Assembly (NCBI GenBank): GCA_002269645.1
Contig: NIVC01001830.1
Span: 1 to 64,000, forward strand
Direction of reading: 5' to 3'
Origin: Macrostomum lignano
Lineage: Eukaryota
DNA: 64,000 nt
The notes under the pieces are model-generated. The model saw nothing but the letters and a program-made list of their open reading frames with translations, ran no database searches and was not told the origin of the DNA. Made by a program: the position numbers and the translations under genes. Below, piece after piece: positions 1 through 60,204 of this stretch. Position 1 is the first letter of the stretch; each line of letters begins with the position of its first letter.

Positions 1-234
1 AGCTGTAAAATCCACGTCGTTGTTTGCAACTGTGAAAATTCATTGCCAAAAGCAGAAGGCAAAATACATTGTTCTCAGAGATCTGGCCAAATAAATACAG
101 AGAGAGATTATATATTTACTCCAAAAAGCAGTTGATGATTATAGATTAACTCTTGAAGAGGTTCAAGCAGCTACTGCAATTTATTCAGAATACAGAGAGA
201 AAAGAGATCAATTGTTAGACGCCGGTTGCGCCTG
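1..234 (+). CDS. 3' end of an unknown ORF in element A (77 codons, open from the window edge)
   Basis: Frame 1 is open from base 1 to TGA at 232-234 (SCKIHVVVCNC...LLDAGCA*); no recognisable motif. Confidence 0.35.
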
Positions 235-453
235 AAGAAGTTAACCATTCGGAAGTCGTTGATAAAATTCTCAAAGAGAGTAGACTTGGTCATTCAGCGA
301 AGGAAAAAATTAAAAAGGAACTGCTGAGAAAGATCTGAGAGAAAAATTGGGTCTAGCCGATAAGCCAAAAGAGTACTCGGCAACACTCAATCTTCAATCA
401 AATGCTCCAAGTGCACCCCCTACTTAGTATTTTGTATAATTTTTTTTCTAAAA

Positions 454-3400: not shown

Positions 3401-3507
3401 AAAATAAAATATATATTCGTGAGATTATGAAACAAACAATGAGTCCGTTAGATGATAAAAGATATTATTTGGATCCTATCAGATCTATTCCTCATCAGCC
3501 AATGTAA
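454..3507 (+). pseudogene. polB: Protein-primed family B DNA polymerase with embedded EndoVII-like Zn/HNH segment; several frameshifts
   Basis: ORF pieces 785-1273, 1439-1768, 1881-2615, 2392-2736, 2720-3127 and a tail to TAA 3505-3507. Motifs YLDKNNLYG, KLLNNSFYGK, YSDCDS, KKVIGKLKDE, DDKR. EndoVII-like CFLC...HNHYNGKYRGAACQSCN. Start at TAAAAATG 449-456. Confidence 0.92.
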
Positions 3508-3528
3508 TCTCATTGATAACATCTTCGT

Positions 3529-5972
3529 TTATTTTTTTACACAGTAAAACAGAACATTTCTAGTTTCTTGCTGTTTACCATCTATCCTACGCCTATATCT
3601 ATCCTTATAATACTTACAATAGTCATTGTGATTCTTGAAGAAATCTGTTATGTATTGTTGTTGGAATTCACGTTTCTCACGTTGGGCTAGAGTCCTATAG
3701 TATTCACTCTCTGTTGCGGCAGTGTAAATTTCTCTAATAAGCAAAAATGTTTTTTCCTCAGTTTCTAAAAATTCATAATTCTCTTCAAAGAAGTGAGCAA
3801 ACCAATTACAATTCTGTATGAATTCATTAGTGTTTTCAATTACGCTTTTCGATCGATATATTTCACCCTTTGTTTGCTTGAAAATTTCTAGTAGGTGTTT
3901 CATCTCAGCAAACTTATATTTATTCTTAAACTCCTCGGTCTTAAGATATGAATCGGCTTTATAAATGTGTTTCGCATGATCAATGATGTCGGTATCTGCT
4001 GTATATTTACATGGGTAATTAATATTTATAATTCGTCTTTTTTCTGCATCTCCAATATTTTGTCTAAAGTCAGGCTTGTTATTACATTCGACTATCAGAG
4101 TTGTGTAAAACGACATTACACTGGCTTGAATATAAATTTCTAGCTTGGATAACCCCACCACCAGTTAGTAATTTTATTGATGCATTGTTCAAGACACCAC
4201 TTACTTCTTGACTGATAACCAACCTCTTTTTATTAATTTGTGCTAGGGCTGGTTGTGGCCTGTCTATTCTTATTGGTAAATTCAAAACATCAGGACTCAG
4301 TGGTGCTGCATAATCAGACCCTAGAGTTCTAAGAAGTAGGTTGTCCTCAACTCCCTTGCCATTTCCACCAGCGCCATCAAACATTATAAAGTTTTCAACA
4401 TTCTTACCCATTAGAGCTGTGGCTATAACGGATTCCCAACTTTTTCTATTTTCTGGATCGGGATGAATTTGGTTATGCAGATTAACAATGAAGCCATAGT
4501 CGTAATCACTCACTCCAAGTACATCCGAGTAATTATATCCCACCGATTTAGTAACGTAATCGTCATATCTATACTCGCGAAACTCACCTGTAAGGAGGTC
4601 GTATACTCCATCGTTAAACCCTAGCAAATTCCATTTCATGTCGAATTCAATTTCATTGTTAGTAAACCTCTCTTTGAACAAAGTAGTTACCTGTTTGAGT
4701 TTGTTGGCTCCTTGTATTGAATTTATATTTATTGTACTCTGTAGTTTCTTTTCAAGTGCTTTTAACTTCTCTTTATCATCAGCCGCCTTCTTAATTGCAA
4801 TTTCGAGTCTAGTCTTTCGGTGGTTTAACTCACTGCTAACAAGTTCTGATATTTTAAGAAATATGTCATTTATACTACTTAGTTCTCTCCACTTATCATC
4901 ATCAAAATAGTAAATACCATCGCTATTGTAAATTATATTATTCTTCTTATATTCATAAACAAAGTTGGTTATGTTAACGTCAGTGAAATTATCATCAAGA
5001 AACTCAATCCTACCATAATAATCATATTTGCTTTTCCATTCCTTATATTTACAATAATTTTCTTCACTAGCCCATTTCTTCAACGTACCGATAGTAAGTC
5101 TGTCCTGTGCATCAGCAGAGCTGGTATTGGTGCTATTCCACACATTTTTACATGCCTCGGAATCGAACTTATCATAATTTACTTTTGACCAATCAGTGAA
5201 TACTTTGTACATTTCATCACCACTGTCTATGTCGCGGAGTATAAGTGCACCTTGTACCAAGAATCATAGTCTTGGTTTTTGTGTTGTATTATACTTAACA
5301 ACTTTGAAGCTCCTTCACAACTGGGTGATGGAACGGTGCTTTTTAGTGCCTGTTTATCTTGTTCTTGGATTTCATTTTTATCCGTGGCTTTATTAATCTA
5401 TTTATCTCATCAAGAATTACATCTGCATGTCTATTAAGTCGCACTTTGTACGTTTGTATTCCTATTTCACCATCCACATAATAGAAACCTGGTGGAGCAA
5501 ATACTAAGCGGAATATCAAAACCCACACTTTGTTGAATCGTTACTTTCAATCCATCTACTTTGTTAAAGTAAAAGTGGTGTCCCTTGTTTGTCTGAACAA
5601 CCCAATCACAATGAGTCATACACAGTTCATTCAACTCAGGGCATAGGTCAGCATTATCAATATCGATTACGGTTATATTTGAGTTTCTAGTATCTATCCA
5701 AATCATGTTGTCTACCTGGTCGAAATGGTGGGAGGTTGAATTCCTATCTGCTTTGTTGGCATTCCTGACGGTATTTTTTTCTTTGTTTTACTATTCCATG
5801 TTACACTGCAACTTCCGAATTAAAATTAAGTTCTCATAGAGATTAATTAGTTTATCGTACGATTTTGTTTGTTTTAAATTTGTCAATCTTGGTGGTGGGC
5901 ATCATGTTTTGAAGCGGATCCTGTACGATCACAGGAGAGAAACTTGAATCGTTTTGATTTTTTCTTTCCATT
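3529..5972 (-). pseudogene. Prim-Pol/PriCT-2/D5-like superfamily 3 primase-helicase, frameshifted
   Basis: Pieces 5467-5706 (VIDID...TNKGHHFYF), 4082-5260 (FTDWS, LTIGTLKKWA, FNDGVYDL, Walker A GAGGNGKG) and 3529-4161 (PDF...AEKRRIININYP). Putative start TAAAATG at 5972. Confidence 0.85.
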
Positions 5973-6802
5973 TTATTTAAAATAAATTTAACAATATAAT
6001 TCATCAGTTTCAATGTACTTCTCAAGGGTTATGGGGAGTTTGAAAATGTTCAACTTAAGCATGACGAAAAATTCATCATTCCTTATGTGCTGTCTCGAAA
6101 TCAATGCCCATTTATCAACATGTGCAAGATATACTCTGAATGAATACAAATAAGGGGGCATTTACAATCGGTGTGTTTTAATATTTCTGCTTTATATTCA
6201 TCGTAAGCTTTATCAATTTCTTCAATTAGTCGAGCCTTTCGAGTGGTGTTTTTATTTGAGAGAAATTTATAATAGAATCATAATACTTTTGTGGCAGTGC
6301 ATTTCGTACATTTGGGTTAGCTTCCATTTTTCTATGAAAAATTTAACATTTTTGCTTTCTTTTGGGCAAATTTCTATAGATAATCCAACTTTAGCATTTT
6401 CTGTGTATCATTATACTTTGTCTTCTTAATTTTTCGCTACTTTTGCGCCTACTTCATTGGCAGCTTTTTTATTATTGACTGTCTTTGCGATTCCGGCTGC
6501 ACCTGCCTGTCTTATGAGAGGTAGATTGTCTTTTAGTAAGTTGGAATGGTGCTTCTAGTATCAAAATACCTCTCCATTGTACTCTAGGGCTCACCTATTG
6601 TATACTCTCTTAGCTTGCGTGGATCTGTAACGGGGCACATTTTTGTCTATTTTTAGAAACAGAAAAATAAACACAGGAACAGAAAGACTTTCAGACACCA
6701 AAGGCCAAACTCCATTGGGCTAAATGTGGCCTGCTCAAAGCGGTGATATATTTGTTTAAATTATTACCTTAATAAATGTTTGATATCAAATCATGTTGAT
6801 AA

Positions 6803-7378
6803 TTATGGCGCATTAGATGGTTCTATATCAGCGCGGCATGTTGGGCACCTAACCATGTTGCCCTCTTGAATTCCAGTGCGATAACATATTTCACAAACTA
6901 CAGCTCGACAACATGCCATGGTAACGTTTGGTGGCCGTGGTTCGTGTTGGCAGATTGGACAAAGCCCTTGATTATTCCCCGGCTGAGCTGGATGGTTCTG
7001 TACTTGAGTCGGGTTATCCTCTGGTTGAATATCAGCTAGTTGGTGCTCCATATCTTGGCGATAAGCAACCAAGCGCCTCTCTGCTTCTTGAACGCGACGT
7101 TTTTGAAGATAGTAGTTCTAGGAAAGGGTTTGGTGCGCTCGTATATGATTTTTGTAAACTAAAACCTTATAATGTAAAAACACTTTTTAACTAACCTTTA
7201 GCTGATTAAAGAAGCGCTCTTCATTAGCCAAATTTTGTGGGTTATACTCCAAAAAGATGTTGATGGCAATATCTCTAAACATTGAGTTCCTATGGTGTTG
7301 TCGCAAATTTCGCTCTCGAATTCTAAGAGTTGCTCTAGCGGCAGTAAGCCTCTCGTGCAAATTCGAGAAAGAAGGCAT
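6803..7378 (-). CDS. RING-finger protein (putative E3 ligase); probably one disrupted gene spanning ORFs 7187-7378 and 6803-7072
   Basis: CPIC-x9-CC-x3-CEIC-x11-CPTC in 6803-7072; the upstream helical piece lies in another frame. Confidence 0.65.
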
Positions 7379-7486
7379 TGTAGGAATGATAATTTGTAAG
7401 AAGGTAAAGTTAGTAGAGAAAAATTACTAGACCTTGCCGCTCGTGGCCATTCATTTATATATTTTTATGACAAAACGTCAGACCCC

Positions 7487-7587
7487 GCATTCCATTCAGA
7501 CCAAAACACGAGACCAATTTTTATCTTTTTATTTTTCGAAATTTTCTTCTCGCGTTTTGGTCTCGCGTTTTGGTCTGAATGGAATGC
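7487..7587. repeat. 30-bp inverted repeat with a 41-nt T-rich spacer
   Basis: gcattccattcagaccaaaacacgagacca (7487-7516) versus tggtctcgcgttttggtctgaatggaatgc (7558-7587), one mismatch. Confidence 0.9.
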
Positions 7588-7596
7588 ATGACTCAG

Positions 7597-8074
7597 TGTA
7601 GCAAGAGTATAAGATAAAAAATATAAAACCCCGAATTCCTGTGTTAGTCATCGAGTGAAGTTTGCCTACTTGCTTTGCTATCTTGGTCGGACAATAGCCG
7701 ACCATATTGTTGCGGTGCGAGCTTGCTTCTGTGTAGCAAGAGTAGATGAAAAATATAAAACCCCGAATTCCTGTGTTAGTCATCGAGTGAAGTTTGCCTA
7801 CTTGCTTTACTATCTTGGTCGGACAATAGCCGACCATATTGTTGCGGTGCGAGCTTGCTTCTGTGTAGCAAGAGTATAAGATAAAAAATATACAACCCCG
7901 AATTCCTGCGTTACTCATTGAGTAAAGTTTGCCTACTTGCTTTGCTACGGTGGTTGGACAATAGCCGACCATATTATTGCTCTGCGAGATTGCTTCTGTG
8001 TGTAGCAAAAGTAGATGAAAAATATACAACCCCGAATTCCTGCGTTAGTCACTGAGTGAAGTTTGCCTACTTGC
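7597..8074. repeat. About 3.5 tandem copies of a 132-135-bp unit containing two hairpins
   Basis: The atata(a/c)aaccccgaattcc motif recurs at 7621, 7753, 7888 and 8022. Internal stems GGTCGG/CCGACC and CTTGCT/AGCAAG. Confidence 0.9.
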
Positions 8075-8170
8075 CAGCTTCCTAAGATAGTAATTTTTTG
8101 TTTATTGACCCCGTTGGGAGTTTTTGTACTTATGTTGTGTTTTTAATGGTGACTATGGTATTATGTCTAA

Positions 8171-9549
8171 TTATGTGACAATTATGTCTAAAATCGGATA
8201 AAGTTGAAAGCCTGAAACAATAAGAACAGTTGATCCTTCAGTGGCTGAATTAATATGCACTCTATAACCGGAGAATTTTTCGGTGGAAGCTACTTCAAAA
8301 TATTTCATCACTCCAGGAACTAAACCAGCATTTTCGGTAGAAAAAATATTCCTAAAGTCTCTCTTGTTATTGCTCCCTTTCAGAATAAAACTTTTTGGTT
8401 GATTTTTTATAATTTCACTACCTACTGCTTTGGTTCCTTTCAATCCGAATTTCCAAATTTGAATAGATTCAGGAAGTTGTACTTCAATGTAAGAATTGGG
8501 TTCATTCCTCGATGCCCATTCTGAATTAGATACTATATAACCCCAATTATCTGACGTTTCAAATGCTCCTGATGACGCTACATTGAAACCCCTTTCTCTA
8601 TAGTTTTGACGTGTTGCTAGTGAGGGAATATATCCTGTATAAGATTTGAAACCTAGTCCCCGCCTTAGTCGCAGCTCCACTGATTCAAGTGCATTGTCTA
8701 CGTATAGCTTTGGTACAGCTTGAAGTCTATCTATAGGCCACACTAAATCATTAACCACTGTTTGTCTCTCAAGTAATTCAACTTTTGTAAGCTTTACGGA
8801 ACCAGAAAAATTAAGAGAATAATGGAAATAATATGAGGGTTTGGGTATTTTTTTCCTAAGATGTGCATTGCCCTTCGTAGTTCAATGGGTGCACTTTGTT
8901 CAACAGGTGTCCAGTTTGTTCCATTTAGGCTCACACTAACAGACCAACCAGGCCACACCTCTCCTTCCAACTTTATCTCTACAACTTTCCTAGCTCTTTT
9001 CAAAAATTGAAATCGTATCCACTTGTCTGAGTCATCTGCACTGCTCCATTCTGAAGCCGGGTTTGAATCTGCAACATGATATGCTGCTGAAGAGTTATGA
9101 GAAGCGGTCACTTTCATGTCAGGATGGGAAGCGTTTGAAGTCAGTAATGAAAGAATATTGACTAATTTCGAACTCTCTGTACCTCCCGCAGTACCTTGCC
9201 TTTCTGCTAACAAAGTGTCAATCTCAGTTTTAGAATACATCTTAGTGTCAATTTCGGTTTTAGAATACATCTTAGTGTCAGTTTCGGTTTTTGTGTAGAC
9301 ATTGTTTACGCGCCCATGAGCATCGTCAATTAATTGTAGCATGGTGATATTCATTGCGTCACTATCTTCCTTTGAATAAGAGTCTGAAACATTTCTCTTT
9401 GCTAACAATAAATTATCTATTTCCTCTCTCTTATATCCTTCATTTTCATTGATGTATCGATCATCAGCTAACGCTATTGTTATTCCAGGTGCTATATCAT
9501 TTGAATTTGACGAGTAACCAAATTGATTAGCAGTATTCTTGTAACTCAT
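8171..9549 (-). CDS. Fibre/receptor-binding protein with YxKxExD shaft repeats and two F5/8-type C (discoidin)-like domains; one frameshift near 8.8 kb
   Basis: 8794-9549 has YTKTETDTKMYSKTEIDTKMYSKTEID repeats, then W-rich ...EWSS...WIRFQF...SLNGTNW. 8171-8758 has a second such domain (EWAS...YIEVQLP...PKSFILKGSN). Confidence 0.65.
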
Positions 9550-9977
9550 TTTAATTGCTGCAAAATTTCATTATAGCTATCTCCTTTATCGATTCGATGT
9601 AAAAAGTACAGCGACATTTGACCACAAAATTTCTTATCTAAAGTTTGAATTTGTTCTTCCATGTCTCCACATATTCTATTCTTTGTGTGATTAAACTTTT
9701 CCATAATTTCCAGTGTGGGCGGTAGTGCATAGGAATCAAAAAAATAAACCTTATCATGAGCTGAAAAGATAGCTGAATGATGTATACCCCGTTCTTTCGA
9801 AGTGTGAATATTTGTCATAAAGTAACCATACTGTGGTAAATCAACAATTTCATCTCTCATGGCATAGCGAAATGGTTTTAACTTGAGATATTTTGCCCAA
9901 TTTATCAGATCAATATTAGTCGTAGTGTCAGTCCCAAACTTTTGTTTAAATGCATTCCATGTCTCAGCTTCGCTCAT
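9546..9977 (-). CDS. Adenain-like cysteine protease (virion maturation)
   Basis: His (GIHH), Asp (YFFDSY), Gln (QIQ) and Cys (FCG) in Polinton/adenain order. ATG in TAAAAATG at 9977; the stop overlaps the next ATG (ATGA). Confidence 0.88.
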   Translation of the reverse strand: MSEAETWNAFKQKFGTDTTTNIDLINWAKYLKLKPFRYAMRDEIVDLPQYGYFMTNIHTSKERGIHHSAIFSAHDKVYFFDSYALPPTLEIMEKFNHTKNRICGDMEEQIQTLDKKFCGQMSLYFLHRIDKGDSYNEILQQLK

Positions 9978-9986
9978 TTTTAACAC

Positions 9987-10778
9987 TCATATTTGTCGTA
10001 CGTGTAGATTTATAAATATTTCCTCGCCATCAAAGTCGTATAGAACACCAGACTCATCTTCGATGACAAAGTCGAATGTGCTCAACATGTTTGTAGTTAG
10101 TGGTAGGTACACAGGATTTGCAGGCTCTTGAATAATTTTACTTCCCATTGGGACAGAGAACGATGGAATTGAAAGAAGTATTTGCTTATCAATTAAATGA
10201 TTTCCATTGGCTGGATCAGTGATAAAACCCCCTTTGATATTGAGACAACGAACCATGATCGCACTTCTAGCTCCGTCTATCCGAGCTGGATTTGGAGCTC
10301 TCTCAAATGGTTTCAAATACACTTCCGAATTGAATCCCAACAGTCTTCTAAAGTTATTGGAATGTGCATCCCTGAAATCAACTTGATACTCTGTGGCTAA
10401 CCGTAACTCAACCCTACGCGTGTCTAGGCTTGCACTGAAAACAATAGCCCCCTCTTTCCAATCATTTGCAGCTGTTAGCAATCTTTGAATCTCGCTTGAC
10501 AGACTTTTAACTTCCCAAGATCCTGCTTGAATCTTTATTTTCTTCCATGTTCTACCACTATCCCTCGAGTATCGCAACTCATTATTGCCTCCTTCAATAT
10601 TGTTAATAGCATCAAAGACTGCAAACTTTTTTATACCAGCTTCGTATTCTCGATCTTCATACAAATTTATCGGAGTGCCTAGAGTTTGTCGAAATGGGTT
10701 TTTAATTGAAAAGAAGTCAAATGTGCGTTGAAACTTTTTACTCAAGAGGATGTTGACTTTTTCTATTTCTTTTTCCAT
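9987..10778 (-). CDS. Minor capsid protein (penton), element A
   Basis: 263 aa; AVFDAINNI..NNELRY, LLGF, IIQEPANPVYLPL, DESGVLYDFDGEEIFINLHV resemble Polinton mCP motifs; homologous to 22440-23303. Confidence 0.8.
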   Translation of the reverse strand: MEKEIEKVNILLSKKFQRTFDFFSIKNPFRQTLGTPINLYEDREYEAGIKKFAVFDAINNIEGGNNELRYSRDSGRTWKKIKIQAGSWEVKSLSSEIQRLLTAANDWKEGAIVFSASLDTRRVELRLATEYQVDFRDAHSNNFRRLLGFNSEVYLKPFERAPNPARIDGARSAIMVRCLNIKGGFITDPANGNHLIDKQILLSIPSFSVPMGSKIIQEPANPVYLPLTTNMLSTFDFVIEDESGVLYDFDGEEIFINLHVRQI

Positions 10779-10780
10779 TT

Positions 10781-11512
10781 TTAAGCAAGTAATTCTACTA
10801 GCTCTTTATCAACATTGTTATGTCCCTCTGCTTTTGCGGCTAGTAATGTCAACACTCTTTCACTGAGTCCAGATCCCGGTTTTACTCGATATCCTGGTGG
10901 ATTATCTTTCAATATCCTTACTGCTTGCTTATAATTCCCACTTGATTTGGCCGCTGGATTTTTACAGTGTTCAATGAGGTTAACATAATCCTGCAATGTT
11001 TGCATCTTGAATTGCTTCAGCTCTTCACCATTTTCAGTTACTTTAGGCATTTTGAACAACTCTTCAAGATCTTCAGAAAATGGCATTCGGAATTCGTTGA
11101 CAATGATGTCCCGACCTTGTTCATGGAATTCAACCTCTATTACAGATGATCCAAATATATATCCAGCATCAGTTTTTTGAATCCGTATACTAGGCGCTGG
11201 TCTTTGAGTTATTGGAATCTTTCCAATTTCTTCAATTATTTTGTCAAATACTTCCAGAGGTTCAAATCGTCCTTTTGGTGTACTTAATTGCGGAACTGGA
11301 ACTTTTTGATTCTGAAGTTTATCAACAAGGTTGGCATTGAAATCAATAAATTCATCAAGCTTTTCTGTGACAGGTTTTTGAGCTAATGGAGCCACTCTTG
11401 CATATAAACTCTCTTCTCCAATTTTCAAATAGCGTTGAGCATCATTTCTGGATTTGTACGTTTCTCGCTGCTTTGCTAAATTAATGAGTTCTCTTATATA
11501 TTCATTAGTCAT
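10781..11512 (-). CDS. Conserved Polinton virion-associated protein (PY-like), element A
   Basis: 243 aa; C-terminal GSGLSERVLTLLAAKAEGHNN...ELVELL pattern; a similar protein spans 19880-21093. Confidence 0.55.
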   Translation of the reverse strand: MTNEYIRELINLAKQRETYKSRNDAQRYLKIGEESLYARVAPLAQKPVTEKLDEFIDFNANLVDKLQNQKVPVPQLSTPKGRFEPLEVFDKIIEEIGKIPITQRPAPSIRIQKTDAGYIFGSSVIEVEFHEQGRDIIVNEFRMPFSEDLEELFKMPKVTENGEELKQFKMQTLQDYVNLIEHCKNPAAKSSGNYKQAVRILKDNPPGYRVKPGSGLSERVLTLLAAKAEGHNNVDKELVELLA

Positions 11513-11514
11513 TT

Positions 11515-12288
11515 TTACAATGGGATTTTAGTTAGAACATCCTTATACAAATCTTGCTCATCCTCATCAGCTCTTGTATTTATATAGATATAGCCATACT
11601 TCTTTTTCCAAGCCTCTCTACATTTAGCCTTGAATATAGCGGGTTCATAATTCGTTTCTACATTTCTAGCAATGTGATTTAAGTTTGTATCTTTTTGTTT
11701 AAAGATTATGTAACATGTCGTATTCTCCCTGACAGTATTGCGATCTAGTTTGGTAAAATTTTGAGCTAGATAAAAACCACAACAGTTTCCATGCCTGCCT
11801 CTCTGAAACAGACTTTCCTGAAATTTTTGATTAGCCTCTCCCAAAACATCGTCCAATATCACACATGTCTTTAGTCCATTATGAAAAATTTCTTCATTTG
11901 GAGTATGGGAAAGAGTGACAGGAATTTTCTCTATTACTTCTGAATTTTCTGATGTGCTTTGCACTCGACCAGGGTTGGCTGCCTCTCGACAAATATGTCT
12001 AATATCTTCAGTAGATGCATCCTCACTCACCTGGTAGACATGATAGAGTGAGTTGATAAGAGAAGGTGGGAGACCATTTTCAAAGCCATATTTTAGAAAC
12101 TGATACTCTGGATCCATTTGAGATGCTCTGGGAACATATAAAACTAACTCATTAAAGTCAACTAGTTTTTCAGGACTTGTAAGAATATGGAATAGTAAAT
12201 ATGTTTTACCCGTATTTGTAGCGCCGATAATACAACATAAAAGAGGATTAGGGAAAATAGGATCATGCTGAAATTTTACTTTGGGCAT
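11515..12288 (-). CDS. A32/FtsK-like genome-packaging ATPase, element A
   Basis: Walker A GATNTGKT, Walker B VILDD, RGRH motif, YLAQ, C-terminal YGYIYIN. Confidence 0.9.
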   Translation of the reverse strand: MPKVKFQHDPIFPNPLLCCIIGATNTGKTYLLFHILTSPEKLVDFNELVLYVPRASQMDPEYQFLKYGFENGLPPSLINSLYHVYQVSEDASTEDIRHICREAANPGRVQSTSENSEVIEKIPVTLSHTPNEEIFHNGLKTCVILDDVLGEANQKFQESLFQRGRHGNCCGFYLAQNFTKLDRNTVRENTTCYIIFKQKDTNLNHIARNVETNYEPAIFKAKCREAWKKKYGYIYINTRADEDEQDLYKDVLTKIPL

Positions 12289-12309
12289 TTAAAAAAAGAA
12301 AAAATGACC

Positions 12310-13673
12310 TTATTCGACGCGGGTCATTTGATATTCACTGGTAACTTTTATTACATTCTTTGTTTGTTCAAGAATTAGTGCAAAAGCAGTCAGCTCAACA
12401 TTTGTTGACTTCTTGATAAATAATTGAATATTCACTCCACTCTTGACCAGAAACTCATCTTGAGCTGTTAGATCAAAGCAAAAGATTGGATAGATGGTTA
12501 GAAAGTCTTGTTTATTGAATGGAGGAGTTACACCGAAACGGCTGCAGATGTCTTCGTACATTTCATACGCTCTGTGAATGTCTTGAGCTACTGGATCAAT
12601 TTCAACATAATCATTCGGATACATCACCTGATTTAATCTGACTTGAAGCTGGGTTATTTTCACTGCATTTGCTCCAGTTTTGTAAGACACATACTTGTGA
12701 TCATTAACTATATATGATGGGTTGTTTACGTCATATTTGAAAGCTACAAAGATTGCAAGTGGCATATTGGAGATGTTGGCTATGTTCCATGTATATGGAC
12801 TTCCTTGAATGAGTTGTGGTGGAACCGTTACCCTCTCTGGAAATGATACTGTAATGTCCTTGTTGAGTGATTTTAGAAAAGCTGCTTCAGCACTGGGTGA
12901 CAAAGTAATAGCAGGGATCCAAATCTCAAAGCTATTAATAGTTAACTTAGCTTCCGTCCCGGCAGCTCCAAAGAAAATTTCAGCATCGTTAGTCTTTCTT
13001 GTCCATGTGAATTTATATTTAATTCCTTTGCTAATCTTCTGCCAATCAAGGAACCCAATGAGAGGTGTTAATGATAGTTTGATTGTTCCACCTCTGTTTG
13101 GAGCATTAGTGACATTGTTATAATTTTCAAGCCTCCTAATGTATCCAGTATTCGAATCCTTCTTATTGAGTCTATTTTTCATAGCGATTGCTGCAGTTCT
13201 CACAGCTTCAGCATCTGCGTTGTTTGCTAGAGGTATATCAGAAACAGTCCCAGCATCTCCAGTGTCTGGAATCCATCCGTATGCTTCTCCAACTTCATTC
13301 ATTAATTTTGAGTACATTACGGACTTTAAGATTGTGTCATACTCTCCAGGATCATTATAGACTTTCTTTGTTCCTCCAATGTCAACTATGAGTTGAGAGA
13401 AAAGTCTCATAGGCCAATTATGTTCTAGAGTAATGTTCGTATTCAAGTCGGTGTTATCTCGTTGTGTTATTGAGTATTTTATACAACCGAATGCCTCTGA
13501 CATGAGAATGTATGACTCTGTTGAATTGACTTCATGAACTATTTGACCTCCTGCAACATTGAGATTATTAGTGCTACCTGGAGTTGAGAAATCTTAATAT
13601 AGTCTTCTTTCTTTTTGAAAAAGCTAAAAGTTTTGTCCTCATATATGCTCAGTATATCCTTTTTGTTCTCCAT
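12310..13673 (-). CDS. Major capsid protein (double jelly-roll), element A; one frameshift near 13590
   Basis: 397-aa ORF plus an out-of-frame N-terminus starting at TAAAAATG 13673. Motifs LFSQLIVDIGG, FVAF, QVRLNQVMYP, YPIFCFDL; homologous to 21125-22411. Confidence 0.8.
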
Positions 13674-13693
13674 TTTTATAAGAGAAATTTCAA

Positions 13694-14146
13694 CTAAGCT
13701 TCATGAGGTCTAAGAATTATCCCATTACCCTGTTTCTCCTTTTCAACTTTAAAAGTCTTTAGCAGCCACTTGACTGCTTCGCTGGGTACTTGTTCGACTC
13801 TTTTAGCCGCATCAACTAATACTCCACTCCCTTGAGCCTTTTTCAACTCTTCTAGTTTTTGCCGTTCAATGCTTTCTATTGTCTTATTATGTTTAGCATT
13901 GTTGGCTGTATTAACACTTTTTGCAATCATTGTACCAACTCCTGAGGCTGCTCCGATACCACCCAAAATTGCTGGTAGTAAGCCTAATAGAGGAATTATT
14001 CCACCTTCATGTTCTTTCTGTTTCTCTTGCAATTCTCGAATCTTCTCTTTAGAAAGATATTGCTTTTGCTTATTTACAGTAACATATCTTGGTTTTCCCT
14101 CTCGAACATATCGATTGAGTCTTGCTTCAGTGTTTTTCTCGCTCAT
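13694..14146 (-). CDS. Putative core protein with an adenovirus pX/mu-like hydrophobic segment
   Basis: GGIIPLLGLLPAILGGIGAASG after a basic N-terminus; GxG-hydrophobic motifs QGSGV and QGNGI. Confidence 0.5.
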   Translation of the reverse strand: MSEKNTEARLNRYVREGKPRYVTVNKQKQYLSKEKIRELQEKQKEHEGGIIPLLGLLPAILGGIGAASGVGTMIAKSVNTANNAKHNKTIESIERQKLEELKKAQGSGVLVDAAKRVEQVPSEAVKWLLKTFKVEKEKQGNGIILRPHEA

Positions 14147-14154
14147 TTTTAAGG

Positions 14155-14577
14155 TCAGAATTTCTTCAAACCATTGCCTTGTCTCAAAGACACTTGAGAC
14201 TGTTCTGCTGTTCCTAGAGCCTTTTTAACAATATCTTGAATAGCCTTATTTGATTGAGAAGCTATCTGTTGCTCTTCTTCCATTCTTTTCTTTGCTTCTT
14301 TATCTCTACGTTTCTTTTTAATATATTCCAGTTCCTCACCTGCTTTAGACATGTCACTGTATGATTTCTTCGCATCGAATATGTTCTTCGCTGTGGTAGC
14401 TGTTTTACCTATTGCATCAGCTCCACTCACAATTTTACTTCCATGATTTGATAAAAAGTTTGTGACACCACTGATCATATCACCAATTCCTTCACCCTCT
14501 TTATCAGCTAGTAGTTGTGAATCAGACGTTTCAATCTGACCTTTCGCCCGTTTGCAGTTTGTTCGATAGGCGCTCAT
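14155..14577 (-). CDS. Putative core/membrane-lytic protein (pVI-like amphipathic helix), element A
   Basis: Likely start TAAAAATG at 14577 (MSAYRT). GEG-IGDMISGVTNFLS amphipathic stretch and terminal QGNGLKKF; similar to 19486-19863. Confidence 0.45.
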   Translation of the reverse strand: MSAYRTNCKRAKGQIETSDSQLLADKEGEGIGDMISGVTNFLSNHGSKIVSGADAIGKTATTAKNIFDAKKSYSDMSKAGEELEYIKKKRRDKEAKKRMEEEQQIASQSNKAIQDIVKKALGTAEQSQVSLRQGNGLKKF

Positions 14578-16769
14578 TTTTAGTTGAAAAATTTGCTGGT
14601 AGAAGCTGGGATTTGTAAAATGATCCAATGATTTCTTCTCCATTCTCATCCTCAATAATGTAGGTTATGGGATTGGAGTAAACTATTTTCTTTATCCTAA
14701 ACACTTCTGAAATTTTCCAATATCCTCTTCGACCCTTTTCAAAGTGCTCCTTATATCTATAGATATGAACTTTGTCACCTACTTTGAAGTTTGGTTTCTC
14801 ATTTGAATACTCGAAAGTTGGCTTTGGTACTCGCTCAGGATGTTTAGATGCTTCTGAAGGAGTTATCAGAATCTCAGAATGGATTGTGTTGTTGTATTTT
14901 TCAACAATAGCTGGCAATGTGTGGAGCCACTTCTGATTACCCTGTAGATCAAATTCAAACCAGAGTTTATTTGTGAGAGTACGATTGAACCTCTCAATCA
15001 TTGCATTCTTGGACTCGCCATAAATTGAAAACATCTTGTTAATATATTCACCCCTTTCATCCTTCTTTCTAATGTTGTCTTTTGAAAACGAGTATAGCTT
15101 GTACATATGCTGATTATAAAACTCCTTGCCTTCATCTACACAAAGTCTCTCTGATCGTCTTCCTGATTCCTTAAATACTTTTTGGAAAGCTTCTGCAACT
15201 TCCGCTCCCGTCTTTGTTTTCAAAGGAACTGCCCAGGCGTAACGTGTAAAACCATCTATGATAGTTAGAGCATATTTGTAACCTCTTTCGGGCGGTAGGA
15301 TAATGATATCTGCATGCCAAATTGTGTCTTTTGCATAGTGAATCATTTTTCTAAATACTCTTGGCTTTCGATATTCTTTATGCAATTTTACTGCATCTTC
15401 ATAGCTAAGACCCTTACCATAAATTGTTAGACAGTCAATACAATTGTTGGGGTTGTGAGTATGAATGCCTAATCCAAACCGAACTTTAGCCTTGATAATA
15501 CGCTTTACTAGATTTCGAATGAGTCTCTCTTTCACAGACAAGTCACTGGTTGGAATAGCATCTAAATCAGCTATCATTTTTTCATCAGCTATATGCTTCT
15601 TTGCTAGAGCTTCCTCTGGATTTGAAGAAGTGTTTTCAGCATCTCTATAGTTTTTGTCATGATAGTAAGCAGTCCAATCGATTGGGTTAATTGGTAGACT
15701 GTCATACCGAGGCCGGTCTGTAATTGGATTGAGTCTCTTGTCTAAATTTGTACCCGGCAGTTGTTCCTCAATCTTTCGAAAGAGGCTGGACTTTATCTTA
15801 AGGCTTCATCAGGATTGACCAGATCCTTCAGCCCCACCCCCATTAAGTCTCTGAACCTTCTCCATATCCTTGTCAACTTCGTTCGGACTTAGGAGCTTGG
15901 CTGCGGATTTCCACCATGTCCTCAAGCTTGTTACCATCGAACCATAGGTTCGCGGACGAAGTCCGATTGGGAACAGGAATTACCTGTGTTCCTTCAGAAG
16001 ATTTCTCAACTGAAGTGGTACTTGAGGCTGTTATTGACGTACTAGAATCGGACGGAGTTCCCGCAATTTGAAGGTGTCGCCAATCACTAAGCACTTGTTT
16101 AATGTTGGTTATAATGTTTTTGTATTGATCACCATAAAGAAATTTCAATGCAAATTCTCCTGTTATAAGGGCGATTCCATTGTCTAGTAAAATATTCTTA
16201 GGTTCCTTTGTAGTTTTATTGATGCATACATAATACAACTGATAGATGGGATAAGAATTTTTATAGTCTAATAGTTTCTGATAATTCCTTTCACGACTTG
16301 ATGAACTGTCCGTGTTATCAGAAGATTTAAGCTCTAATGCAATCTTTCGCTCAACGTGAACCAGGTCAATCTTTTTTACCTTCTCGAATCCAAAATAATT
16401 TTCTGCTAATATTTCATATAGTCTGCCTAGTCTCATTTGAATAACTTTAATCTTGTGTGAAATTATTAACTCTTCTTGGAAAAGATCATGAAGAATTTGA
16501 TCATGCCCAACCTTATCATCAATTGGTTTCAGAAGAATTTCTCGAATTGTTTGCTCCATTTTTACTATAGAAACTTTAACAAGTGCTTATTTGATGACTA
16601 GCAAGGACATTGACTTCCTCACTCAGGCCACTACGTAACCTGCAAAAGAATACCCTGGAATATGAAGTTCTCCTGGGTATTTTCCAGTGGCGAAGATGGG
16701 TGGTAGTTTTGTTATAGCTGACTGAATATCTAAAGCATTTCCTAGAAATAATGGTTTACTGAAGGCCAT
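14531..16769 (-). CDS. PLA2-integrase fusion, spliced: join(16769..16638, 15757..14531), 452 aa
   Basis: Exon 1 is 44 codons ending GELHIPGYSFAG. Exon 2 starts PGTNLDKRL...PINPIDWTAYYHD (parvovirus-type PLA2) and stays in frame into the rve integrase (WHAD, CVDEGKEF, AMIERFNRTL; C-terminal PITYIIED..GEEIIGSFY). Confidence 0.9.
15758..16637 (-). ncRNA. Group I self-splicing intron, subgroup IC1 (880 nt)
   Basis: 5' exon ends in U with a U-G pair in P1 (CAGGU/GCCUG); terminal G at 15758. P AAAUUGCGGGAA 16069-16058, Q AAUCCGCAGC 15909-15900, R GUUCAGAGACUUAA 15856-15843, S AAGAUAAAGUCC 15799-15788. P2-P9 pairings are present and removal restores the frame. Confidence 0.96.
15873..16559 (-). CDS. 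Intron-encoded PD-(D/E)xK restriction-endonuclease-like protein (Eco47II-like; putative homing endonuclease), 228 aa
   Basis: QMRLGRLYE...KIDL...IALELKSSDNTDSSSS...YQKL pattern. Starts in the P2.1 loop at TAAAAATG. Family assignment is from remembered motifs, not a search. Confidence 0.7.
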   Translation of the reverse strand: MEQTIREILLKPIDDKVGHDQILHDLFQEELIISHKIKVIQMRLGRLYEILAENYFGFEKVKKIDLVHVERKIALELKSSDNTDSSSSRERNYQKLLDYKNSYPIYQLYYVCINKTTKEPKNILLDNGIALITGEFALKFLYGDQYKNIITNIKQVLSDWRHLQIAGTPSDSSTSITASSTTSVEKSSEGTQVIPVPNRTSSANLWFDGNKLEDMVEIRSQAPKSERS

Positions 16770-17200
16770 TTTATATATATAAAATTTACTATCGTTGAAT
16801 TGGATGACACTTTCATATTGTATATACCTGAAATTGCATTAAATTGACCCGAGGATCCAACCTTTCTCATGGTTTTAGAGCTGGAATCGTGAAAATTGCA
16901 CTTTTTAAAAAAAAATAGAAAATCACAAAAAATCGCTGTTTTCAGACCATTTTCACCTGTTTTTAGTCATTTTTCAGTTATTTTTAGTGATTTTCAAAAT
17001 GAGTGAGGGCATGAGGGCGAGGGCACCCCCCCTTTTTAAAAGTATAAAAAATCCGGAAATTCTGTCTTCTGAGAAATATACCACAGGCCAATGCCCCCCA
17101 CATGCCCTCACCCTCAACACCCTCAGTCACAGATATATGTATATTTATATATTTTTTTATATTTATCACACACACACACTTGAATCCATGACCACCTGGT

Positions 17201-17299
17201 AGTAGTAGTATGTTATAAGGGGCTGAGTCATCCAGCGAGCTGGCGCGTAATGCGCCCGAGCGATAAGTGTGGCGCAGCCCCTTATAACATACTACTACT
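17201..17299. repeat. 99-bp fold-back with 25-bp perfect arms starting (AGT)3; probable element terminus or mini-element
   Basis: agtagtagtatgttataaggggctg (17201-17225) and cagccccttataacatactactact (17275-17299). Confidence 0.9.
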
Positions 17300-17565
17300 G
17301 ATCCAGATAGAACAGACACAGATCCTAGAATCATATTGCTGTAGTCGAAAAATTTACAGTGGCTTTCATAGCGTTTAATTTTCTTTGTGTTGTGGAAAAT
17401 ATTTTTTTCAAGATCATCTCGCATTTTTTGAATCTCTACCAGTCGAAACTGTTGAGAGTTACAAGTAATGACGGGGTAGAGTTTTTGTTGCTCATATTGG
17501 GGTGCACTAGGTGCACTAGGTGTTGTGGGAGCATTCGGATCATAAAGAGAATTTTGAGCATCCAT
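17300..17565 (-). pseudogene. Truncated Polinton membrane-type protein (N-terminal ~88 aa)
   Basis: MDAQNSLYD...QQFRLVEIQKMRDDLEK...KRY...MILGSVSVLSG is protein-like up to 17300, then runs into the fold-back and low-complexity DNA. Confidence 0.55.
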
Positions 17566-17676
17566 TTTTTTAAAGAAATTTTTAAAAAAATAATCGGCAA
17601 CTAGTTGGTGGTGGTTAGATTTGTTTTACGGTTGATTGCTTCGTCTGCAGTGACGGCAACAGGTCTCTGAATCTGC

Positions 17677-18420
17677 CTATTCATTATCTGTGAGCTCCAT
17701 TCTACGCATGATCTCAAACAAGTCGGTTGGATCACTTGTTTCCCTTGTGGTCTGTGGTGCCTCTTCAGCGTCAATGTTTTTGAGATTATGCAAGCGTTCA
17801 AGACGACCGATTCTTCTCACCGATTTCTGCCATTCGGTAAAAACTAAATCTACAAAGACTTTAATTGCAGTAATTCTTACTTTGATTTGATCATGCAACG
17901 CTGTTGACTGAGTCATGAACTCTTCTAAATTCCTCACTTTACATGTGTTGGTTGCGACGTTTTCTTTAATTCTATCATGCAATGCTGTTGACTGGTTCAT
18001 GAACTCTTCTAAATTCCTCACTTTAACTGTGTTTGTGAAAACTCCTTCTTCAAGAATGCGCATCCGCCTATCAATGGAGTTTCTCAGAAGATTAATTGTC
18101 GATGCTAAATTTGTTCTTAAACCGTTGATTTGCGAGACTGCCGAAGTTATTTCTGACCTAAGTTCATTAGTTGCGTTTAACAACGGCACATAAAGCTTAT
18201 CACTTTCAAACTTCTGCCTAGCTACTTTAAGCCTGAGATCTTCCATGTTTATTTGCAACTGGTGCATGGAGCGCTCCAGGGCTTTCAGTCTGTTTTTATT
18301 CAGTTTGATCTCTGGGATCTTTTCGTCGCTGTTGATATATCGCCTGTCAAGTATGGATATTTGAGCTGATGTAAGAGCGCTGTTGCCAGAAATGGATTCA
18401 CCTGCAAAGTTTATTGACAT
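17677..18420 (-). CDS. Coiled-coil fibre-like protein, element B
   Basis: N-terminus MSINFAGES...DRRYIN parallels MSYKN..QFGYS...DDRYIN of the element A fibre; heptad-rich with an internal duplication (KVRNLEEFMxQSTALHD twice). Confidence 0.5.
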   Translation of the reverse strand: MSINFAGESISGNSALTSAQISILDRRYINSDEKIPEIKLNKNRLKALERSMHQLQINMEDLRLKVARQKFESDKLYVPLLNATNELRSEITSAVSQINGLRTNLASTINLLRNSIDRRMRILEEGVFTNTVKVRNLEEFMNQSTALHDRIKENVATNTCKVRNLEEFMTQSTALHDQIKVRITAIKVFVDLVFTEWQKSVRRIGRLERLHNLKNIDAEEAPQTTRETSDPTDLFEIMRRMELTDNE

Positions 18421-18436
18421 CTTTTAATAGCAAATT

Positions 18437-19237
18437 TTAAATTACAGTTCTTTTTTCTTTGCTGATAATCACAAACTGGTAAGGCTGATTCCACTTGTCA
18501 TAGCAAAGATTAACGAATTCCTCTTGTGAAATCTTTCTGCTTGAGTTTTTTGTTGGATTTATGAAATAGGCAGGCGCAATGACCTCATTGTAAAATCTTT
18601 TTAACCTGTCCTGTGGAATGGTTGGAAACAGGAGAATCAGATTGCAGTTCCCACGAATTGTTTTGTTCGGGAGCTCGAACCAGTTCTGTGCAATGTAAAT
18701 TACATTACAATTGTTATGTCGTCCTCTTGTAAAATAGTTTTCTATCTGCTTCTGTGGGCCTGTCATACAATCATCAAAGACGATCAAATGCTTTCTCCCC
18801 TTTTCTAGCTCATCTGGTTGGGGTAGAAGTTTGGTCTTTGGATCAGCCTGTGGATCTCCATAGGTGAACACTTTAATGTTCTGCCATTTTTCATTGTCTT
18901 TGAGGTGCTTTGCATATTCGGCAGCTACAATTTCAGGGTTACTGGGAAGGCTCATTTGGTTATTAAAACATGCAATAATGTCCTCTTTGTTCAGCTTGTT
19001 TTGAAGCCCTGCAATCAGCATTCTATACTCATCTTGATACAGTGTGGGAGAGTAGATGTGCAGAGTGTCATAGTCGATAAAGCCAGGTCTAAGAAGCATG
19101 TTAAAGACTCTGAATGTTTTACCTGAACCTGATGAACCAACAACAATGCATCTGAAGTGACTCGGGATTGACTCATGATGAGAAAACTTAATCTGATTAC
19201 GTGTCCAGTGAGGATTGAAGTCGTTTGAAAAGTCCAT
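18437..19237 (-). CDS. A32/FtsK-like packaging ATPase, element B
   Basis: Walker A GSSGSGKT, Walker B IVFDD, RGRH, YIAQ, IRGNCN. Confidence 0.9.
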   Translation of the reverse strand: MDFSNDFNPHWTRNQIKFSHHESIPSHFRCIVVGSSGSGKTFRVFNMLLRPGFIDYDTLHIYSPTLYQDEYRMLIAGLQNKLNKEDIIACFNNQMSLPSNPEIVAAEYAKHLKDNEKWQNIKVFTYGDPQADPKTKLLPQPDELEKGRKHLIVFDDCMTGPQKQIENYFTRGRHNNCNVIYIAQNWFELPNKTIRGNCNLILLFPTIPQDRLKRFYNEVIAPAYFINPTKNSSRKISQEEFVNLCYDKWNQPYQFVIISKEKRTVI

Positions 19238-19276
19238 TTTTTCTATGATGAAAAAAATTTAAATAATAAATAATGT

Positions 19277-19445
19277 AGATGTGTCATTTCGGGACTTAGA
19301 TGTGTCATTTTGGGACTTAGATGTGTCATTTTGGGACTTGGATGTGTTATTTTGGGACTTAGATGTGTCATTTTGGGACTTAGATGTGTCATTTTGGGAC
19401 TTAAATGTGTCATTTTGGTACTTAATTGTGTCATTTTGGGACTAG
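19277..19445. repeat. 21-bp minisatellite, about 8 copies
   Basis: gatgtgtcattttgggactta repeated. Confidence 0.9.
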
Positions 19446-19485
19446 TCTTGTACCTTTACATTTCTTGTACCCTCGGAAAGTACCT

Positions 19486-19863
19486 TTAGTCAAATTTGAA
19501 ACCACTTCCTTTTTTAATGCTAGCTCTCATCTTCTCATAGACTGCAGGGTCCACACTGTCTGGATTTGGGGCCAGCGGGGCCAGCGGTTGAATCTCTTGT
19601 TTAGGTGTTACAGTATCCTTTATCTTTTTGGCTGCTGTGGCTACACTGCCAGCCGCTTCGGCAACGTTCTTGATGTTCTCTTTGTTCTCTCCAATGACCT
19701 TAAAAATCTTAGCCCCCTGAGCGATCAAATCAGCAAGGCCATTCCCAGAGCGTTCTTTTCTTGGATAGTGGCCTGCAGGGAAAAGTCCAGATCCGCGTTT
19801 AATGAGATTAAGTTCCTCTTTGTCATAGTATTTGTCAATGTCTTTTTCGAAAATAATTGGCAT
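19486..19863 (-). CDS. Putative core/membrane-lytic protein (pVI-like), element B
   Basis: RGSGL, SGNG-LADLIAQGAKIFKVI, AGSVATAAKKIKD, KGSGFKFD; layout parallels 14155-14577. Confidence 0.45.
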   Translation of the reverse strand: MPIIFEKDIDKYYDKEELNLIKRGSGLFPAGHYPRKERSGNGLADLIAQGAKIFKVIGENKENIKNVAEAAGSVATAAKKIKDTVTPKQEIQPLAPLAPNPDSVDPAVYEKMRASIKKGSGFKFD

Positions 19864-19879
19864 CTTTTTAAATAGAAAT

Positions 19880-21093
19880 TTATTTTTTGTTAAACCGTGA
19901 AAGCAGAAGCTCTCTCGCCCTCTTATCGATGTATTTTCTCTCAAGCATTTTATTGAGGATGTGAACGAACTCTTTTCTATTCTCATCTTTCATTCCGGTC
20001 TTTGCTGCTCCTAGAAGAACCGCTACTCGCTTGTAGATTTCAGCTATTCCTTTTCCAGTTGAAGGCGGTTGGTCTTGAGGTTGTGGAGTTGGTTGGGCTT
20101 GTGGCTGCTGGGGAGGTGATGCAAAAGACTGCTCACTTTCAGAGATGGAACTGTCATGTGGTGCCTGTCTCTGTTGAGGTGTGAAAACTCTTTGCTTGAT
20201 TCTGTTCATTCGATCTGGGGAGTGTTGTTCTAAGTGTTGCCAGTCTGTTGGGTTTTGTTTCTTATATTCAGCTACTTTCAAAGGGTCTAACTGCTCGAGA
20301 TGACTGAGTACTTGTTCTTCTGTGGAATGTTGCTGCTGTTGTGGCGGTCGTTGTTGTTGTTGTGGTTGCTGTTGCTGTTGTTCTAGATATTTCATCTGAT
20401 CAATGACTTCCCCTGATCTGGCAAACCAAACCATTGTTTAAAGTGCTTGTACTTTTTGAAATTAGTCAGGTTGACACCGCCATCGTACATGTGTTTCAGA
20501 ACTTCTGGGACCTTTAGTATTTCTATATCTCTAGCAAGAGAAAAAATCACTAGATCTCTGTAGTTCTTTAGCTGTTTGTCCGAGATTCTCTCTTGGTTCT
20601 TGGTCATAAAATTCAGTAAGGTTTCTGTGAAAGGAATGCTCTTAGTTTCCGAGCCTTTGACAACAGAAATATGTTTCTTATTTATGTCGATATAATATTC
20701 CACTGGTTCATTATAAATGTTTCTTCTCCACATACTTATTCCAAATACATATTTCCCATCATGTTCTACACGCTCTACTGGTCCAAAAATGTTATCTGTC
20801 ACTTTTAGTTGCTGTTGTGGTTGTGATTGTTGTGGTTGCGGCTGTATCTGTGGTGCTTCTGGAATTTTGCCCAAAACCTTTTGCACTTGGGTTTCCTGTA
20901 TGTCGTCGATAGTTTCTTTGACCTGATCAATATTTTTCTTAGCTTCTCCATACCCGGGTTTATGAAACTCTGTGGCTGCTTGGACAAACTCATTGTAGGA
21001 TTGTTGCTCCTTATTTATTAGCTTGGTAACTCTCTTTTCTGCCTGCGCCAGCTTTTCTAGTTCAGATATCTGCTGTGTACTTTTTCGCTTCAT
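19880..21093 (-). CDS. PY-like Polinton protein, element B; frameshift near 20400 and a Gln-rich linker
   Basis: 20392-21093 plus 19880-20434; C-terminal GKGIAEIYKRVAVLLGAAKTG...EFVHIL matches the C-terminal pattern of 10781-11512. Confidence 0.5.
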
Positions 21094-21124
21094 TTCTTAT
21101 TTTATTTTATTTTTAGTTAAAAAA

Positions 21125-39864: not shown

Positions 39865-39959
39865 CAGGCTCGATTCTGTTCACAGGGGGCGTAGCCAGAC
39901 AATTGCCTAGTTGTCTGGCAATCAGCTCTTATTGCTCTTGCAGCCAGATTGGGTGCCTG

Positions 39960-56373: not shown

Positions 56374-56429
<56 letters not shown>

Positions 56430-60180: not shown

Positions 60181-60204
60181 ATCAATGATTCAGGCCAGAT
60201 CAGC

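Follow-up and report, generated by a model that had tools for sequence, protein, structure and literature searches.

The window analysed here, a stretch of 64,000 nucleotides (positions 1..64000, forward strand) of Macrostomum lignano contig NIVC01001830.1 (GCA_002269645.1), begins with a virus-like element in which a gene for a phospholipase A2 (PLA2)-integrase is split by a group I intron, and this intron encodes a protein of the Eco47II family of restriction enzymes. The whole element corresponds to a tract that contains no GGNCC (1..18755) and carries genes for a protein-primed DNA polymerase B (pPolB), a primase-helicase, a RING protein, discoidin-domain fibre proteins, a penton-like protein, an ATPase, a capsid protein and the integrase. 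The observations described below are probably explained by a mobile group I intron with an Eco47II-family homing nuclease, residing in a polinton-like virus (PLV) that has been purged of GGNCC. The window was compared with loci L001 to L013, contigs carrying related elements. Relatives L001–L004 and L008, from public assemblies, were aligned with the window to fix the intron ends; the intron-bearing L001 and L008 and the intron-less L006 and L007 belong to a common assembly, and L011 shares its assembly with several intron-bearing loci.

The features expected of PLVs are present in the element: a double jelly-roll (DJR) capsid protein (12310..13503; DJR-like_dom, 1.8e-13), an A32-type ATPase (11515..12288; Pox_A32, 2e-6), an rve integrase and pPolB-like fragments that carry polymerase motifs. 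The gene order is repeated in L006 and L007, and the GC content is 0.35–0.39 in the element versus 0.45–0.50 in the flank. Judged by its gene neighbourhood, the intron-bearing gene belongs to an endogenous PLV in a eukaryotic genome. Retrotransposons (reverse transcriptase/RNase H/rve and LINE-like reverse transcriptase) and DDE transposases abut or interrupt related elements (L001 6343..9694; L006 3036..5738), which confirms a eukaryotic nuclear origin of these 'metagenome' contigs and of the endogenous virus copies they contain.

A single RNA family was recognized by Rfam in the whole window, the group I intron RF00028 (15767..16150, minus strand), with 88.9 bits for a gathering score of 50. 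This hit covers the catalytic core only. Alignment with the five relatives and with intron-less homologues delimits a full intron of 880 nt on the minus strand (16637..15758), beginning just after the exon-terminal U and closing with the terminal G. Exon 1 (16638..16769, minus strand) comprises 44 codons (MAFSKPL...HIPGYSFAG) and ends in TTT GCA GGT, while exon 2 (14531..15757, minus strand) begins with CCG GGT ACA at 15757 and encodes the remaining PLA2 domain (PGTNLDKRL...HDKNY), the rve integrase core and a C-terminal domain, the integrase open reading frame (ORF) ending at 14531. Once joined, the exons form one unbroken ORF of 452 aa in which Pfam recognizes both Phospholip_A2_4 (3.1e-9), a parvovirus-type phospholipase A2, and rve (7.1e-10). 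The junction peptide HIPGYSFAG|PGTNLDKRLNP is identical in the intron-less homologue P0163 (76% identity overall) and also fits the pattern H-[LI]-P-x-[YH]-x-[YF]-x-G-P-G-T, which dozens of PLA2-integrases without an intron share. The unbroken spliced ORF and the peptide shared with P0163 thus establish that the intron-less junction reads GGTCC, and they bear out the original prediction that the intron splits this pentamer at GCA GGT CCG.

The structure of the intron is supported by covariation. The internal guide sequence GCCUG (16624..16628, minus strand) pairs with exon CAGGU to form P1, with a G.U pair at the splice site; the window and L003 share this combination, and in L001, L002 and L004 the exon reads UUAGGU and the guide GCCUAA. 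The P2 hairpin (16603..16620, minus strand), defined on a six-copy alignment, reads GAGGA...UCCUU in the window and CUAUA...UAUAG at the same place in L001, so that its pairs are compensated. A long-range helix, P2.1, lies between P2 and P3 and was recovered with RNAduplex in all six copies examined, with diverged sequences. Its 5' strand (GCUAGUCAU...AAGCACUUG; 16580..16602, minus strand) pairs with a 3' strand (CAAGUGCUU.A.GUGAUUGGC; 16079..16097, minus strand) located within ORF codons ~155–161; the strand pairs are AAGCACUUG/CAAGUGCUU in the window, AAAAUCUUUUAC/GUAAAAGAUUUU in L001 and GUUGCUCUU/AAGAGCAAC in L003. The ribozyme core (P3–P9 with a P5 extension and the terminal G at 15758; 15758..16078, minus strand) exhibits compensatory changes in 23 of 65 predicted pairs among seven intron copies. 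With a covariance model score above threshold, a G.U pair in P1, a terminal G and in-frame exon joining, the insertion can be assigned to the group I introns, and self-splicing is predicted.

Two features suggested by the Rfam alignment were rejected. The Rfam 3' end at 15767, 9 nt early and offering an in-frame site (FAG-EQL-PGT), is ruled out by the intron-less homologues, and P1 and P2, which Rfam put inside the ORF, are placed upstream of it by the multi-copy alignment. RF00028 was also found in L003 (65.3 bits) and L009 (80.6 bits). It went undetected by Rfam in L001, L002, L004 and L008, even at E<=0.01 with relaxed filters; the intron cores of these four loci nevertheless align with that of the window and covary. 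Published and Rfam counts therefore probably miss some of the group I introns of PLVs.

The intron ORF (15873..16559, minus strand) encodes 228 aa with the motifs KIDL...IALELKSSDNTDSSSS...YQKL. The two strands of P2.1 enclose its first ~155 codons, so that the ORF does start in the loop of this helix, as had been proposed. The last ~65 codons read through P2.1', P3, P4, P5 and P6; the tail peptide (TPS.ASSTTS.EK..EGT) is conserved where the underlying RNA helices are, and the position of the stop codon differs between copies. The tail (aa 166–228; 15873..16064, minus strand) overlaps the ribozyme and is probably read-through outside the enzyme fold, and we took residues 1–165 as the enzyme. 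This nuclease domain (16065..16559, minus strand), whose start codon lies in a conserved AAAAAUGGA context, scores 26.4 bits against PF09553 (RE_Eco47II), for a cut-off of 25.9, over profile positions 53–186 of 202; the full ORF scores 25.2 bits. In the intron clade, every one of the 11 proteins matches PF09553 at E<=0.01 (best E 2.6e-8). Searched exhaustively with a profile, a set of 1.84 billion representatives yielded 298 relatives, and 128 of the best 150 match PF09553. From these sequence comparisons, the intron ORF is an Eco47II-family protein, a resemblance that had first been proposed from its motif pattern. A Pfam scan of the ORF at E<=10 returned RE_Eco47II alone; LAGLIDADG, GIY-YIG, HNH and His-Cys box motifs are absent, again as originally stated.

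Sau96I cuts GGNCC, and EcoO109I has the site RG^GNCCY, which contains GGNCC. Eco47II and Sau96I are homologues with 33% identity (PMC3045609), and an Eco47II homologue has been described as a GGNCC cutter (PMC10305163). In the AlphaFold2 model of the intron-encoded protein (predicted local distance difference test score 89.4, predicted template modelling score 0.82), the secondary structure elements H21-55, E66-68, E73-78, H87-102 and E107-112 form the predicted alpha-beta-beta-beta-alpha-beta core that places it in the superfamily of PD-(D/E)xK nucleases, with D65, E76 and K78 on the corresponding strands. The top Foldseek match in the PDB is EcoO109I (E 1e-4, probability 1.0, TM 0.68), and the other top matches are also PD-(D/E)xK nucleases; the modelled fold therefore agrees with the one initially suspected. 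None of the 11 clade members departs from the catalytic D65, E76 and K78 (D-x10-E-x-K), and G45, D65, E76, K78, N85, L96 and N114 are at least 90% conserved in the best 150 of the 298 relatives. Pairwise ratios of nonsynonymous to synonymous substitution rates (dN/dS) are ~0.19 in the domain (for instance dN 0.095 and dS 0.50 for L001 versus L004), a value expected of a nuclease domain under purifying selection. The copy of L002/P0008 is frameshifted.

No methyltransferase domain was detected in any sizeable ORF of the element, and since the element encodes no methylase, it does not represent a restriction-modification system. Fusion to a C5 cytosine methyltransferase was seen in one distant bacterial-type relative among the best 150 of 298. 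Other searches for the nuclease were less productive: the full ORF produced only chance matches to its low-complexity tail among PDB chains, NCBIfam has no model for the family, BFVD viral structures contained nothing matching below E 3e-3, IMG/VR contigs contained zero relatives, and the scan of JGI metagenomes recovered a single locus, L009.

The most striking property of the element is the complete lack of GGNCC. We counted 0 occurrences in 1..18755 for 20.0 expected (P=2e-9), and all four versions of the central base are missing (expected 5.3, 4.0, 3.6 and 7.1). Among the 136 strand-symmetric gapped tetramers of the form XXNXX, GGNCC ranks first in depletion, by five orders of magnitude. 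Low GC content or codon use can be ruled out as the cause, as Markov simulations of order 1, 2 and 3 gave means of 19.6, 18.2 and 12.7 GGNCC and never went below 4 (the minimum in 300 runs at order 3), and the similarly composed words CCNGG and GGCC are present. A host-wide cause is ruled out by the undepleted neighbouring element and flanks. The second PLV-like gene set just past 18755 contains 11 GGNCC for 6.9 expected, that is, no depletion, and the host flank (23501..64000) contains 99 for 142.5 expected. AGNTC, GANCC and other words are far more depleted in this flank, and we read its mild GGNCC deficit as composition heterogeneity and not as site avoidance.

The same pattern is observed in related elements. 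GGNCC is missing from the intron-bearing L002 (0 for 5.1 expected), L003 (0/4.8), L004 (0/4.7) and L008 (0/5.9), across 4.8–14.5 kb, and from L010 (0/6.8). Depletion is not seen in more distant PLVs that have this integrase type (33 observed versus 39.5 expected in L011, 11 versus 16.1 in L012), and flanks of related loci have a normal GGNCC density in 4 of 5 tested, the flank of L010 being low (4 versus 11.2). The loss of GGNCC is thus lineage-specific. The intron-less sisters L005, L006 and L007 each contain exactly one GGNCC inside the element, and in each case it arises where the PLA2 motif encodes Gly-Pro (GGG CCA, GGG CCA and GGA CCC, respectively), which is where the intron inserts. As glycine is encoded by GGN and proline by CCN, an essential Gly-Pro pair cannot shed GGNCC by synonymous change. 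Across the 4026 aa of the element proteins there is one Gly-Pro (7.8 expected, P=0.003), the one at the spliced junction. GGNCC is present in intron-less alleles and is destroyed by the insertion; with no other GGNCC anywhere in 1..18755, the original idea that the insertion removes the target of its own nuclease fits these counts. The GGNCC specificity that we infer for the nuclease is strongly backed by the purge, confined as it is to this lineage, and by the one site retained in intron-less sisters.

The intron is present or absent at the same site among elements that are ~99% identical (L001 and L008 versus L006 and L007). The intron-bearing L008 and the intron-less L006 are ~99% identical over 9 kb, with no difference at all between +100 and +1100 of the integrase. 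Between them, 11 substitutions cluster at -24..+2 of the insertion site, all of them synonymous (S-Y-N-Y-L-G-P), with one version of this patch common to both intron-bearing loci and the other to both intron-less loci. The patch could be a trace of co-conversion during homing or, equally, exon sequence demanded by the guide.

Across 76 homologues, the PLA2 motif has its glycine in 75 and its proline in 68. Six of the eight proline exceptions are among the closest relatives of the intron-bearing clade (G-A-Q in three cases, G-T-G, G-L-D and G-A-N), proline being replaced by Ala, Thr or Leu in the intron-less P0167, P0172, P0178 (L010 8871..10280), P0184, P0188 and P0196. L010, which carries one of these proline-loss genes, has 0 GGNCC in 13.7 kb. 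Judging from their sequences, the proline-loss motifs look like nuclease-resistant escape alleles. In L013, the nuclease gene is free-standing (393..920; 51% identity) and overlaps a PLA2-integrase gene without an intron (910..1698) at the start of the latter. The Ca-loop of this integrase gene reads YKYLGVGNPLD (G-V-G); Gly-Pro, GGNCC and intron are all missing. By analogy, this arrangement matches the pathway proposed for phage introns, in which a free-standing endonuclease comes first and is later captured by an intron. The last ~80 nt of the L013 contig are GC-rich and possibly chimeric.

Other features of the window concern the state of the element and its surroundings. A D5-like primase-helicase is encoded at 4082..5260. 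The pPolB gene with its Endonuclease VII domain (785..3127, plus strand) is broken up into overlapping ORFs, at least five of them, that occupy different frames, the piece at 1439-1768 containing Endonuclease_7 (6.8e-9). The window copy of the element thus looks partly decayed, or else the pPolB gene contains more unrecognized insertions. Neither terminal inverted repeats of the element nor tRNAs were found in the window. A second PLV-like gene set (17677..23303) adjoins the element and comprises a 247-aa coiled-coil protein, an A32 ATPase (18437-19237, minus strand), a DJR capsid protein (21023-22411, plus strand) and a penton-like protein (22440-23303, plus strand). In L004, a similar PX-ATPase-249-aa set lies upstream of the intron-bearing integrase. 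The element and the second set may have inserted side by side through a preference for certain sites, or may together form one composite element. A 30-nt inverted repeat (17201..17299; 93% complementary, 39-nt loop, GC-rich centre), bordered by a CA-repeat and AT-rich DNA, lies between these gene sets and may represent a small foldback element or one end of an element. A 132-bp tandem repeat (3.6 copies, 90% matches; 7596..8074), yielding a repetitive 166-aa ORF, is adjoined by a 31-nt inverted repeat (7487-7587), and a 21-bp tandem repeat (8 copies, 93% matches; 19276..19443) lies upstream of the second ATPase gene. Further downstream, the plus strand of 40001..42000 is extremely purine-rich (GC skew 0.93, AT skew 0.96, GC 0.63), a simple-sequence tract of the kind usual in the nuclear DNA of eukaryotes.

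We propose the following scenario. The ribozyme would excise itself, using P1 formed by exon CAGGU and guide GCCUG and ending with the last base G at 15758, and the spliced product would regain the F-A-G|P-G-T of the PLA2 Ca-loop. The loop of P2.1 encodes a ~160-residue enzyme of the Eco47II/Sau96I family that would cut the 5-bp palindrome GGNCC. Instead of methylating its DNA, the virus lineage would protect itself by removing every GGNCC from its ~17-kb genome. The sole site beyond synonymous removal would be one encoding an essential Gly-Pro, and the 'GPG' motif of PLA2 is such a pair. Because this site cannot be removed synonymously, an intron-less relative would offer exactly one cut site. 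The break would be repaired from an intron-bearing genome, copying the intron in, together with ~25 nt of upstream exon as a co-converted tract. The carrier would be immune, since the insertion splits GGT|CC and the genome has no other site. As a likely side effect, unrelated co-infecting viruses and host DNA, both rich in GGNCC, would be fragmented. In its fullest form, this scenario has a methylase-less 5-bp restriction enzyme homing to a code-locked Gly-Pro in a site-erased genome, also shredding the DNA of rival viruses and of the host, and engaged in an arms race marked by escape through proline loss and by a free-standing precursor; we lean towards this extended version, with less assurance than towards the mobile intron in a purged virus as such.

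Could the nuclease be a conventional homing endonuclease of restriction ancestry that reads a long site, GGNCC having been depleted by some other enzyme, of the host, a helper or a competing giant virus? The known PD-(D/E)xK homing endonuclease I-Ssp6803I indeed reads a 17-bp site (PMC3424549), and a longer site would be available here, the exon around the insertion being conserved for protein reasons. Such an enzyme, however, gives no reason for the GGNCC purge, and the depleted word is exactly the recognition site of Eco47II/Sau96I and is contained in the RGGNCCY of EcoO109I. An enzyme of the host or a helper should moreover deplete all PLVs of that host, which is contradicted by the neighbouring gene set (11 versus 6.9) and by L011 (33 versus 39.5). 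We therefore regard this possibility as unlikely.

Slightly less plausible still is that the enzyme serves mainly as a weapon against the DNA of the host, giant viruses and rival PLVs, with the intron as its vehicle and the intron-less sisters having arisen by intron loss. It is true that GGNCC sites are numerous in non-relatives and in host DNA, that chlorovirus short-site restriction enzymes attack host DNA, that an unpartnered restriction enzyme requires total self-avoidance of its genome, and that the L013 gene exists outside any intron. A weapon alone does not account for the location of the gene in the one unavoidable GGNCC of the genome, nor for a nuclease lying beside the PLA2 motif even when free-standing, as in L013, nor for the synonymous -24..+2 patch that separates ~99% identical alleles with and without the intron. 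As a second role of a homing nuclease, it is compatible with our explanation. It is very improbable that the ORF has decayed to inactivity, or has turned into an RNA maturase or structural helper, and that the intron has stopped moving: the partial overlap of the ORF with the ribozyme, the frameshifted L002/P0008 copy and the broken polymerase gene of the window element point that way, but the dN/dS of ~0.19, the catalytic D, E and K invariant in 11 of 11 clade members, the presence or absence of the intron among ~99% identical elements and the maintained GGNCC-free state all argue against it.

Several points weigh against a GGNCC-specific homing nuclease in a purged virus. The intron-bearing L001 has one internal GGNCC, at 5457. 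In the metagenome loci, the boundaries of the GGNCC-free tracts were set after seeing the site positions, and the expected numbers are small (3–7) because the DNA is AT-rich; for the window, the region defined by gene content (~785..16769) is likewise GGNCC-free, and its figure is little affected by the choice of boundary. The specificity itself is deduced from family, fold and site avoidance, the PF09553 match of the window copy is remote (25–26 bits), and restriction enzyme families can switch specificity. A 5-bp cutter would also hit host DNA, with 99 sites in the 40 kb beside the element. The intron-less sisters might derive from precise intron loss and not be naive targets, and the fragmented polymerase gene may mean that this particular insertion is a decaying relic. 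Finally, GGNCC cleavage, homing by break repair and translation of the ORF are proposed steps, and translating an ORF from an excised or unspliced group I intron in a eukaryotic cell would be a difficulty for our explanation.

Homing endonucleases are thought to require long sites (14–40 bp) that spare the host, and restriction enzymes to require a methylase. If the specificity proposed here is right, both rules are broken: specificity would come from a purged genome and not from the protein, and the target would be chosen where the genetic code makes the site unremovable. This would connect restriction enzymes with homing endonucleases in a way that can be tested, and would provide a route of intron mobilization for which both the free-standing and the intron-embedded stages are observed. 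It would also suggest a function for previously unannotated group I introns of PLVs, a possible explanation of competition among integrated viruses of protists and, possibly, a very small (~160 aa) GGNCC enzyme.

In the literature that we searched, no paper links the Eco47II family to an intron and none describes this system. Group I introns themselves are already known in PLVs, where they had remained unannotated: RF00028 hits of 309–376 bp were reported in 2025 in PLVs of Rhodomonas lacustris (cluster C3/GKS1), Paulinella micropora and Desmodesmus, which have an rve integrase and a cysteine protease, the host gene of the introns being described as encoding a ~50-aa protein without annotation (PMC12220804). 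These introns probably belong to the same family as ours, the ~50-aa protein fitting our exon 1 (44 aa). The PLA2-integrase host gene, the Eco47II-like ORF and the GGNCC depletion are not in that paper, and neither it nor its supplements mention Eco47II.

Among restriction enzymes, R.Eco47II and R.Sau96I (type IIP, PF09553) share with the intron nuclease the Pfam family, the D...ExK motif, a small size and the inferred GGNCC target. The intron nuclease differs from both in being shorter and remote in sequence, in lacking a cognate C5 methyltransferase, with self-protection apparently by site avoidance, and in residing in a self-splicing intron of a eukaryotic virus-like element. EcoO109I (PDB 1wtd/1wte), whose RGGNCCY site contains GGNCC, is the best structural match to the model, at 13% sequence identity. 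The active site of EcoO109I is a shifted EPD-xxK (PMC3424549), whereas the intron nuclease has the canonical D-x10-ExK, and GGNCC has been purged here in every flanking context, not just within RGGNCCY. Chloroviruses offer another example of eukaryotic viruses with short-site type II restriction enzymes able to attack non-self DNA, but their protection is by methylation and their enzymes are not intron-encoded and have no homing drive.

Among homing systems, I-Ssp6803I, encoded by a cyanobacterial tRNA group I intron, also uses a restriction enzyme fold for intron homing. It belongs to another family (PF11645), recognizes a long target of 17–23 bp, is bacterial and is not associated with a genome-wide site purge. 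The original prediction of a homing nuclease of a new type therefore does not stand as regards the recruitment of a restriction fold, for which I-Ssp6803I is the precedent; the novelty lies in the Eco47II family, the short site, the code-locked Gly-Pro target and a purged genome that provides both protection and uniqueness of the target. The closest parallel to the evolutionary path is found in phages, for which Bonocora and Shub are said to have described, in 2009, a 'collaborative homing' with the free-standing F-CphI acting at the site of a cyanophage psbA intron. L013 would be the counterpart of that stage, with a free-standing nuclease beside its presumed target gene, itself bearing a resistant motif, and the window would be the intron-embedded stage, in eukaryotic PLVs instead of phages and with a different nuclease family.

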